Below are positions 50,201 through 53,200 of a DNA stretch of 64,000 bases, piece by piece. The notes under the pieces were generated by a model. The model was not told the origin of the DNA and ran no database searches. It worked only from the letters and a program-made list of their open reading frames with translations. Made by a program: the position numbers and the translations under genes. The stretch's first letter is position 1, and the number at the start of each line of letters is the position of its first letter. Location of the stretch: the NCBI GenBank assembly GCA_002269645.1, contig NIVC01000282.1, positions 569,909 to 633,908 of the forward strand. The letters are read 5' to 3'. This DNA is from Macrostomum lignano (taxonomy: Eukaryota).

Positions 50201-53200
50201 TGGAATTCTATGTCAATTTTTTACTCTATGTACATTTCCTGTACCTTAAAATCATAAAAACGCATCATCTCTGTTACACATATTGTTACACAGTCAGCTA
50301 AGAATGACAAAATAGACTCATAAAAAACCAATGAGCTGACCCGTGCCATTTTAATGGTTTTTAGGCACAGGAAACATGCTAATTTTCTAAAGGAAAAGCC
50401 CCATGAATATCAATATAGCTATATAGGAAAGGCACAACATACCAAAAGATTAACATTGGATCTGCCTCCTATCGAAAGCAATAACAAAAAGACCTTCTGT
50501 ATAATATTCTATGCTAGATTTTAGGTAAAGAATCTTCCACAGCATTATTCAAGGCTGTCATGCAGTGCAGGCTGCCAGCACATAACAGGTAAAAATGCAG
50601 GCTGCATTCAATCCGCACGCACGTAAAAATAATCCAGTCCCATCACCTTGGCAGTCATTGGTGTTAAAAAAATCAATGAGGCAGATTGAAAGAGATGGTA
50701 AAGGCTGAACGAGTTTCATGAAGATGGAAGCTTTCTGATGTGTGTCTGGTTTTCATAATTGTTCATAAACTTTTTCAAACGTATTGGGTAGACTTAAGTT
50801 TTCTGAAATATTTTTTAATGTTCCTAGTTTTCTAAAATGAAAGGTCGATATCAGATCAAGGGGCGTAACCAGGATTAGGGATGCGAATCCTCCTGATCGG
50901 CTGCCGAAAAAGTATTTAGCTCCCCTAACAGTATAGTGCTGGCGCCCCTGGTGCTGACGCCCCTGGTGCTGGCGCCCCTGGTGCTGGCGCCCCTGGTGCT
51001 GGCGCCCCTGGTGCTGGCGCCCCTGGTGCTGGCGCCCCTGGTGCTGGCGCCCCTGGTGCTGGCGCCCCTGGTGCTGGCGCCCCTGGTGCTGGCGCCCCTG
51101 GTGCTGGCGCCCCTGGTGCTGGCGCCCCTGGTGCTGGCGCCCCTGGTGCTGGCGCCCCTGGTGCTGGCGCCCCTGGTGCTGGCGCCCCTGGTGCTGGCGC
51201 CCCTGGTGCTGGCGCCCCTGGTGCTGGCGCCCCTGGTGCTGGCGCCCCTGGTGCTGGCGCCCCTGGTGCTGGCGCCCCTGGTGCTGGCGCCCCTGGTGCT
51301 GGCGCCCCTGGTGCTGGCGCCCCTGGTGCTGGCGCCCCTGGTGCTGGCGCCCCTGGTGCTGGCGCCCCTGGTGCTGGCGCCCCTGGTGCTGGCGCCCCTG
51401 GTGCTGGCGCCCCTGGTGCTGGCGCCCCTGGTGCTGGCGCCCCTGGTGCTGGCGCCCCTGGTGCTAAAGTCCCTGGTGCTAAATTCCCTGGTGCTAAAGC
51501 CCCTGGTGCTGGCGAATAAAATGACTCTCAACTTCCAAAGATGCGCCACGCCAAATGGAAAATCCTGGCTACGCCCTAGACTCGATAGACGTGAAAGATC
51601 CAAACTGGTTCAGAAGTAAGAGCGAGAAGAAAAAGAATGAAAACAGGGAAATGAAAACTCAAGGGGGTAGAGGAGTTTTGGCTCTAAGAGGATGAAAGCG
51701 TGCTAACGGGGAGGTGAATTCTCCGGCAAAAAAGCGGTGGGATGATGCCTGGGAGACTCAATCTCCCTGCAATCGGCGCCTCCCCTTACCAAGAAGGAGC
51801 AGATGATGTAGAATGAGATAAAATAGGGATATCCGACTAGCTGCTGGCAGCTGGGCTCCTCAGTCTGCCCGCTATGGTTGTGAGTCTTCCACTCGATGTA
51901 CGGGTCGCTGTGCCTGTCGCACTTGGCCTCGGCTGCATTGCGTTTGTTGAGGACAACGGGAAAGGGCGGGGGGCAAAGAGCGAGTGAGTATTGATCTGTT
52001 CTGAGACTCTGGACACTCACCAGGAATGAGCACAGCATGTAGAAGCTGATAAAGTACGGGTAGGCTATGGAGCTGCCGCAGGACTCCATCGATTGCGGAC
52101 TGACTGAGTGCTTCTGCTGCTGCTGCTGCTGCTGTCGAAGATTGTTGCCACCCGGCGAGGACAAATCGCATTTCACCTTTTGAGGATCTGCATAAAAGTA
52201 CACTGCATTAGATTCTCTTCCCTATAAAAATCGTGCAAACAGGTGCAAACACTACTAAATGATGCTGCTGGAAATTGAAAAAATGAACCTTCTCAAGATT
52301 TGATCATAGTACTACTAATAGTAAGTTGGCTCAATCTCTGAAGTATCCGGGAACAGAATGTGTGACAGTTGGTAACGCAGGCACAATAGCAATAATTTAG
52401 ATAAACAGCCGCACCGTTCACGCAGGCGAGCAGAATCTCCTGCCAAGCCTCTCCGGTAGCCGACCGGAACAGCACCAGCGAGGCGGAGAAGAAGGTGCGA
52501 AAGTTATTGTTCCGGTTGATGTGCGTCTCAGCGTCCAGCCGGATTTTGCCGAACATCTGCATCCCGATGACGGCGTAGATGAAGAACAGCATCAGGATTA
52601 GCAGGGCGACGTAGGGCAAAGCCTGGAGAGCCGGTGAGCAGTTGTGATGTGCTAGCATATCGACTAGAAAATAACATGCACTCAACCGCAGGGACATCAA
52701 GGCATTATTCATGGCCCTCTAAGGTTATGGCGGCTCCGCTAGGCATCGCTTACCTACAGGAGAATCCGTAGTGAGCAATGATGAGAACGCGGAGCATTTC
52801 ATCTGGCTGGGAATGCCCCGCGTTTACTCAGGACAGGCTAATGGGACAGGAACTTCATTTTTGCCCTGATGAAGAATTTCGTATTCGAAATATCGGCAAC
52901 TTCTTAGCTTTTTTGTTTGTCTTGTTGCTTTGCTATGTTAGCGCCCTCGGGATTGGAGGCTCTCCCTCTCTCCCTCTCTCTCTCTCCCTCTCTCTCTCCT
53001 TCTCCCTCTCTCTCTCTCTCCCTCTCTCTCTCTCTCTCTCTCTCTCTCTCTCTCTCTCTTTCTTTCCTTCTCTCTCTCTCAGGCTTAATTTCGAAATATC
53101 GGCTACTCAAATAAAATTGACTTATTTCAGTCCTTTTCACAGTGTCAGTGCCTGAGATTGGAGGCGCCCTCCTCTCTCTCTCTCTCTCCCCCTCTCTCTC

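Follow-up and report, generated by a model that had tools for sequence, protein, structure and literature searches.

A probable mutually exclusive exon pair encoding the domain IV turret and outer IVS6 in an L-type calcium channel gene of Macrostomum lignano

The stretch of DNA analysed here, referred to below as the window, comprises 64,000 nucleotides of the Macrostomum lignano genome (contig NIVC01000282.1 of the GenBank assembly GCA_002269645.1, positions 569,909 to 633,908 of the forward strand). On its minus strand lies a part of a gene for the alpha-1 subunit of a voltage-gated calcium channel, and within this gene two adjacent homologous exons, designated A and B (Table 1), each of which encodes a version of the loop preceding the S6 helix of domain IV (IVS6) and of the outer half of this helix. 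The channel portion inside the window is limited to domain IV, the first exon of which is 57186-57028, and the C-terminus. Judging from its sequence, the gene clearly encodes a Cav1 (L-type) alpha-1 subunit, because the best matches in a PDB search were Cav1.2, Cav1.1, and Cav1.3 (E values from 3e-67 to 5e-65), ahead of Cav2.x (1e-60 to 4e-50), and because exons for the C-terminal EF-hand, pre-IQ, and IQ calmodulin-binding region were found at 48153-47504. Among full-length proteins in the databases, the nearest bear the annotation L-type or "muscle calcium channel alpha-1". The constitutive exon 52622-52415, located immediately upstream of the pair, carries the selectivity-filter glutamate within a TGEAWQ-type motif (the EEEE locus), which aligns with FRCATGEAWQDI of Cav1.2. 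As a whole, this exon aligns with residues 1248-1315 of Cav1.2, ends in phase 1 (...ACVN plus one base), and is 100% identical to the corresponding part of the M. lignano protein P0095 (UniRef A0A1I8H277). The latter is 100% identical to the gene in the window throughout the exons flanking the pair, and in this model the pore-loop exon is joined directly to exon B, from which it differs by one residue.

Exon A encodes a turret with a polyglutamine (polyQ) tract and two cysteines, followed by a canonical outer half of IVS6 with the Tyr-Met pair; the IVS6 part aligned residue for residue with Cav1.2 in the PDB search. The product of exon B has a shorter turret, also with two cysteines, an N-glycosylation sequon (NHS), and a divergent outer half of IVS6 with Tyr-Ile. 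The two exons match each other in tblastn with E = 3e-8 (58% identity over 31 residues), therefore their similarity is not due to chance; a tblastn search for a third copy in the 64-kb window found none. A preliminary description of the locus had reported tandem homologous exons running from phase 1 to phase 0, with canonical splice sites and 88 nt between them, and reading of the sequence, together with a script, confirmed every one of the junction coordinates; the donors of both exons (GTGAGT and GTAAGG) are strong. The intron separating A from B contains no in-frame stop, and its length is 1 mod 3. The intron preceding exon A has a second in-frame AG, located 15 nt upstream of the acceptor (aatgcag/tgtacttttatgcag). 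Use of this upstream acceptor (window 52188-52205) would lengthen the loop by five residues (VYFYA), and the heptamer aatgcag found there is present also at the end of the intron before exon B. The constitutive exon that follows the pair, 49079-48952, contains the Ile-Ile-Asn matching I1470, I1471, and N1472 of rat Cav1.2.

Divided by three, the lengths of exon A (167 nt) and of exon B (143 nt) each leave a remainder of two, and either A alone or B alone reads into the sequence IINLFVAV. The absence of both exons would result in a frameshift, and the inclusion of both, for which the preliminary description had foreseen a shift of the frame, would bring about a stop inside B. We suppose that A and B probably represent a tandem-duplicated, mutually exclusive cassette of the M. 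lignano Cav1 alpha-1 gene. Each mRNA would carry exactly one of the two exons, and the resulting isoforms would differ only in 48 to 56 residues, that is, in the extracellular loop between the pore helix of domain IV and S6 and in the outer half of IVS6. Isoform A should possess the canonical IVS6, with Met at the position 4i12, and a long polyQ loop without a glycosylation sequon, and isoform B should possess Ile at 4i12, another Ile next to it, and a shorter loop with the conserved N-glycosylation sequon. Exclusivity would be enforced at least by the reading frame, as mRNAs that include both exons or skip both would be non-productive and are probably targets of nonsense-mediated decay (NMD). 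We infer the alternative use of the exons, their mutual exclusivity, NMD, tissue specificity, and a functional difference between the isoforms, whereas the anatomy of the pair, the homology and age of its copies, the constraint on both of them, and their conservation at a second locus follow directly from sequence comparison. Within IVS6, the two exons differ at the positions equivalent to M1464 and L1465 of the rat channel; as to the loop, that of exon B contains an SD-Y--W motif, which single-copy exons from other animals share (P0359, P0361). Since the selectivity-filter Glu and the Ile-Ile-Asn of the inner S6 are encoded by constitutive exons, the effects of the swap are to be expected on the outer vestibule and on the interface between domains III and IV, not on the filter. 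The swap would likely tune the outer vestibule, and with it the access of ions, toxins, or partners, as well as the III-IV pore interface (gating and the binding of lipids or drugs), and these effects may differ by cell type.

Comparison of A with B provides grounds for estimating the age of the duplication. Over the 14 codons of the S6 half, the proportion of synonymous differences (pS) is 0.78, a saturated value that includes an AGC/TCA serine pair, and the proportion of nonsynonymous differences (pN) is 0.14, with two of the 14 residues being different (Met to Ile and Leu to Ile); in the turret and loop, pN is 0.55. Saturated synonymous sites, yet such a low pN, indicate that the duplication is old and that the helix part is under purifying selection in both copies. 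A and B alike retain an open frame, the phase, the splice sites, the two cysteines of the loop, and 12 of the 14 helix residues, and, as far as can be judged from these features, both exons look functional.

A similar pair was revealed at another locus of the same organism. When 1.84 billion representative proteins were searched exhaustively with exon B by HMMER, six matches were returned, the two best of which, P0357 and P0358, are informative here. The protein P0357 (UniRef A0A1I8FGX9) corresponds to a divergent second M. lignano locus with a Met-type exon, a short intron, and a B-type exon, i.e., with the same A-then-B order. Its B-type exon is 67% identical to exon B and keeps the CQQL-GYPYF of the latter (where CGS--AYPYF is near-universal), the two cysteines, and, at the same place, an N-x-S/T sequon (NRT); this conservation is that of one related locus at the protein level, in an assembly rich in indel errors, which makes the fine details uncertain. 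The A-B intron implied by P0357 is about 52 nt long and might be too short to be spliced, and the openness of the intron probably explains why the automatic model of P0357 reads through both exons. If the 88-nt intron of the gene under study were retained, the product would likewise stay in frame and would contain two half-S6 segments. Two further M. lignano proteins, P0280 and the paralog P0355, in which all four domains are present, use a Met-type exon resembling A. At the paralog locus L005, the first exon for this part of S6 could be followed for 15 codons (DPSVLCDKASDSYQA...) up to the end of the locus sequence. The genome of M. lignano is highly repetitive and partly polyploid, and the window is full of tandem repeats, so the pair might be suspected of being an artefact of assembly, with collapsed or stacked haplotypes or homeologs. 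We regard this as extremely improbable, considering that A and B, with loops of unequal length and no closer in sequence than the identity given above, are unlike stacked alleles, and that the A-then-B order recurs in P0357, i.e., at another locus and in a separately deposited gene set.

Several observations, presented in this and the next paragraph, weigh against the interpretation of A and B as a mutually exclusive cassette of a working channel gene. Exon B has Cys-Gln-Gln in place of the almost invariant Cys-Gly-Ser before S6, as comparison with the consensus revealed, and the polyQ in the loop of exon A is encoded by a microsatellite, (CAG)7, which suggests weak constraint on that loop. 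Besides, the automatic models choose a single exon each, B in the case of P0095 and the Met-type, A-like exon in the case of P0280. All this would agree with one of the exons being constitutive and the other being a relic of an old tandem duplication, spliced in never or only aberrantly. However, a neutral copy of such an age should be unrecognizable, whereas in A and B the saturation of synonymous sites is accompanied by the retention of the helix residues, both cysteines, frame, phase, and splice sites; moreover, both exon types are intact in the divergent P0357, including the peculiar residues of B. A relic is thus, in our view, rather unlikely. Concerning the splicing itself, the 88-nt intron is similar in size to other, apparently normal introns of the gene, and splicing of A to B is therefore not sterically excluded. 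A search for competing RNA structures (complementary elements of the docking/selector type) yielded only weak inverted repeats at the chance level. Protein searches, which included a padded chimeric query, yielded no transcript-derived spliced protein with exon A of this gene, but only automatic M. lignano models, and the supporting models P0095, P0357, and P0280 are all automatic predictions from an error-prone assembly.

As for the gene as a whole, no exons of domains I to III were detected in the 57.2-64 kb part of the window with a full-length M. lignano paralog of 1717 aa as the probe, although at the paralog locus L005 the first exon of domain IV is preceded by the IIIS6 exon at a distance of only 0.6 kb. 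The stretch 57200-64000 contains instead an EGF/Laminin-G open reading frame (ORF) on the same strand as the channel (58190-59401) and a FAD/NAD-binding ORF on the other strand (60747-61673), both unrelated to the channel. It may be either an intron of great length in which other genes are nested or the flank of a 5'-truncated copy. In the latter case, nothing but domain IV and the C-terminus would be left of the gene, the locus would represent a pseudogene or belong to some other transcript, and the exon pair would play no role in a working channel; the models P0095 and P0357 lack domains I to III as well. Nevertheless, the assembly from which they originate is fragmented and contains many indel errors, and the domain IV exons differ from those of L005 with pN of 0.06 against a saturated pS of 0.77, without stops or frameshifts over about 220 codons, which implies long purifying selection on the channel gene. 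At the C-terminus, the exons for the EF-hand and IQ are intact, too. Finally, the introns of this gene are, as a rule, much longer and richer in repeats than those of the paralog, and hence an intron of more than 6.8 kb is plausible. We consider the truncation quite unlikely, though the window alone is no proof of a full-length gene.

The preliminary description had proposed looking for the duplicated exon in Cav1 genes of other flatworms. In Schistosoma bovis, a single copy was found, the same intron positions flanking one exon with a loop of about 215 residues. Since these flanking introns are common to both species, the cassette is a duplicate of one ancestral exon. No second exon copy was found in the loci of S. 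bovis or Adineta vaga, and the IVS6 exon pair is absent from Ca-alpha1D of Drosophila immigrans (L004), in which IVS6 is encoded by a large single-copy exon. A contig of Paragonimus that was also read ends ahead of IVS6. No such pair was found among 47 metagenome Cav loci or among 120 full-length Cav1 proteins. An analogous tandem pair (FYMICSFL followed by FYIICSFM, with a short read-through intron) was found in P0358, an ORF of a 1.9-kb Logan contig, the exon similarity of which displayed no specific taxonomic affinity. At the IVS6 residues in question, the Cav1 proteins of trematodes have FYMV, and those of cestodes have FYII or FYIV. Orthology of the Met- and Ile-type exons across flatworms was considered, too, but is undecidable, given about 20 alignable residues and a Met-to-Ile substitution that requires a single-base change. 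It is conceivable, though doubtful, that the Met/Ile pair of IVS6 is an ancient or recurrent module, existing at least in the source of P0358 and possibly ancestral to the rhabditophoran flatworms, of which the parasites kept one version each. If so, splicing or exon loss at this cassette would set a property of the pore and of the drug site across flatworms, including the lineages relevant to anthelmintic pharmacology.

Two more features of invertebrate Cav1 genes were noticed in the course of these comparisons. In trematodes (locus L002, 22387-23091; P0234-P0265), the single exon corresponding to A and B contains an insertion of about 150-250 residues in the domain IV loop, which is poorly conserved and rich in N-glycosylation sequons. 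The other one is P0237 (UniParc UPI00078A572F), a 2682-residue invertebrate Cav1 model in which two other exons of domain IV each appear as tandem copies that are read through, namely, the pore-loop exon (...NRNNNFQTFPQAVLVLF) and the exon of the inner IVS6 and EF-hand (...DEFVRLW / ...VDFVQLW). These copies are probably unannotated mutually exclusive pairs, and they suggest that pore exons of domain IV have been duplicated elsewhere too.

IVS6, together with IIIS5 and IIIS6, forms the receptor region for dihydropyridines (DHPs) and phenylalkylamines. The preliminary description had assigned the Tyr-Met pair of IVS6 to the DHP site of vertebrate Cav1, and this assignment is borne out by the list of six IVS6 residues needed for the DHP interaction in rat Cav1.2, which includes Y1463 and M1464 (PMC2362100). 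The position occupied by Met in exon A and by Ile in exon B corresponds to M1464. Exon A together with the next exon matches the rat channel in all six residues (I1460, Y1463, M1464, I1470, I1471, and N1472), and the exon B isoform matches it in five of the six, Ile at the M1464 position being the sole difference. It had also been stated that Ile at this position is linked to the lower DHP sensitivity of Cav1 from Lymnaea. According to an account of the work of Senatore et al. 2011 (PMC8980814), this holds in the sense that I4i12M is one of three changes in LCav1 that jointly lowered the IC50 of isradipine from 632 to 64.5 nM (about 10-fold).

There are, however, arguments against a pharmacological meaning of the Met/Ile difference. 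In that account, I4i12M was tested only jointly with two changes in domain III (PMC8980814). Domain III of the gene under study lies outside the window, and its determinants were compared by eye, by aligning a paralog and a trematode protein with Cav1.2: the M. lignano paralog P0355 has LVTFLLEFMF, with Glu for Gln1043, and YIVFIIIIAFFMVNIF, with Phe for Tyr1152 and Val for Met1161, and the trematode P0165 has TFLLEF, i.e., Glu at the Gln1043 position as well. Schistosomes are known to respond poorly to DHPs (PMC6796685). Anyway, DHPs are synthetic compounds, and sensitivity to them cannot be a selected function. A difference between the isoforms in this respect is possible, but it may be small against a low baseline, and we would regard it as a side effect open to testing and not as the function of the pair. 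The DHP "switch", deduced from one residue, is thus the weakest part of the earlier interpretation.

In vertebrate Cav1.2 and Cav1.3, mutually exclusive exons are those designated 8/8a in IS6, 21/22 in IIIS2, and 31/32 in IVS3, and the IS6 pair affects DHP sensitivity. The pair described here resembles them in the gene family, in the choice of one of two adjacent homologous exons, and in the swapping of a transmembrane segment. It differs in that the M. lignano exon covers the turret of domain IV and the outer half of IVS6 and should have arisen by an independent duplication in flatworms; besides, the cassette includes an extracellular loop that differs strongly in length and composition. Three tandem-exon events each have been described in CACNA1C and CACNA1D, and in Drosophila there are two in Ca-alpha1D, three in cacophony, and one in Ca-alpha1T (PMC9741552). 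The ten independent events in human and fly each concern a different exon (PMC9741552). The earlier statement that the well-known exclusive pairs of vertebrate Cav1 lie outside IVS6 is thereby upheld, as the described human and fly events affect other exons (PMC9741552), in agreement with the Drosophila locus. Drosophila Ca-alpha1D is comparable to the gene under study as an invertebrate Cav1 with independently evolved tandem exon pairs (two events, PMC9741552), although in the D. immigrans locus L004 the duplicated exons correspond to residues about 1321-1373 and 1487-1560, i.e., they are located around domain III.

Also among the closest known systems are exons 12a/12b of Lymnaea Cav3 and the alternative pore exons of invertebrate NALCN, which swap turrets or filter residues (Senatore et al.; reviewed in PMC4436565). 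Like the M. lignano pair, these are exclusive exons of invertebrate four-domain channels that exchange a Cys-containing pore turret or loop, thereby altering pore properties. In contrast to it, they are located in domain II or III and alter Na/Ca selectivity or a filter residue, whereas in M. lignano the filter Glu, encoded by the constitutive upstream exon, remains unchanged and both versions keep two loop cysteines. As for Lymnaea LCav1, it has the same Ile-for-Met substitution at 4i12 as exon B, but there it is a fixed species difference and not a splice choice. In the open-access literature searched, which leaves out most subscription journals, no paper was found that describes a Cav1 exon pair at IVS6, whether in flatworms or elsewhere.

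The positions of the channel exons and of the introns around the pair are given in Table 1.

Table 1. Exons of the Cav1 alpha-1 gene of M. lignano, with the introns and the repeat run of the A/B region; positions are those of the window
Feature	Position	Strand	Basis and remarks
Domain IV exon: IVS1 and end of the III-IV linker	57186-57028	minus	tblastn with P0095, P0165, P0123; boundaries approximate
IVS2 exon	~56341-56231	minus	tblastn with P0095, P0165, P0123
IVS3 exon	~55457-55374	minus	tblastn with P0095, P0165, P0123
IVS4 exon	~53475-53368	minus	tblastn with P0095, P0165, P0123
Pore-loop exon (IVS5 and domain IV pore loop)	52415..52622	minus	translation; acceptor ctccag/GCT, donor AACG/GTGCGG
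Intron, pore-loop exon to exon A, 227 nt	52188..52414	minus	GT...AG boundaries
Exon A, 167 nt, phase 1 to 0	52021..52187	minus	acceptor ttttatgcag, donor GTGAGT; sequence read and translation
(CAG)7 run, source of polyQ in the exon A turret	52114..52134	minus	sequence read
Intron, exon A to exon B, 88 nt	51933..52020	minus	GTGAGT...pyrimidine tract...AATGCAG
Exon B, 143 nt, phase 1 to 0	51790..51932	minus	acceptor caatgcag after a long pyrimidine tract, donor GTAAGG
Intron, exon B to next exon, 2710 nt	49080..51789	minus	holds a minisatellite and a MITE-like inverted repeat
Next exon: inner half of IVS6 and start of the C-terminus	48952..49079	minus	constitutive; starts in phase 0
EF-hand region exons	48153-48052, ~47970-47872	minus	tblastn with Cav1 fragments and frame translations; approximate
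Pre-IQ and IQ exon	47797 to ~47504	minus	tblastn with Cav1 fragments and frame translations; approximate
Further conserved C-terminal block	45811-45671 (C-terminal region 45638..48153)	minus	tblastn with Cav1 fragments and frame translations

The minisatellite in the intron after exon B occupies 50936-51514 and consists of 38.6 copies of the 15-nt unit GTGCTGGCGCCCCTG with 97% matches. The inverted repeat of the same intron, similar to miniature inverted-repeat transposable elements (MITE), lies at 50096-50490 and has 64-nt arms that are 86% complementary. Throughout the window, 32 rows of the TRF output have a score of at least 200. Micro- and minisatellites are unusually dense in 1-23000 and 53900-56900, an example being a 22-nt unit that occurs in 109 copies at 12565-14957, and the strong GC and AT skews seen locally are due to this density of tandem repeats. 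Three ORFs of the plus strand are neighbouring genes unrelated to the channel: 19117-21054 encodes PITM-type LNS2 and beta-sandwich domains (Pfam E = 1e-54), 25520-26950 an RPE65/carotenoid oxygenase (Pfam E = 4e-58), and 27913-29889, located in a stretch of 67% GC, an MFS sugar transporter (Pfam E = 1e-13).

In general, tandem exclusive exons are a recurrent way to diversify voltage-gated calcium channels, and no concept is overturned by the present case. It would add to them a tandem-exon event at a position unreported in the literature searched, i.e., at the outer vestibule of domain IV and the outer half of IVS6. The pair provides a natural comparison for the roles of the domain IV turret and of the positions 4i12 and 4i13 in gating, permeation, and the binding of drugs and lipids in an invertebrate L-type channel. 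The Cav channels of flatworms have long been of interest to pharmacology and are hard to study, and a difference between isoforms in the tractable free-living M. lignano could be useful in this respect.

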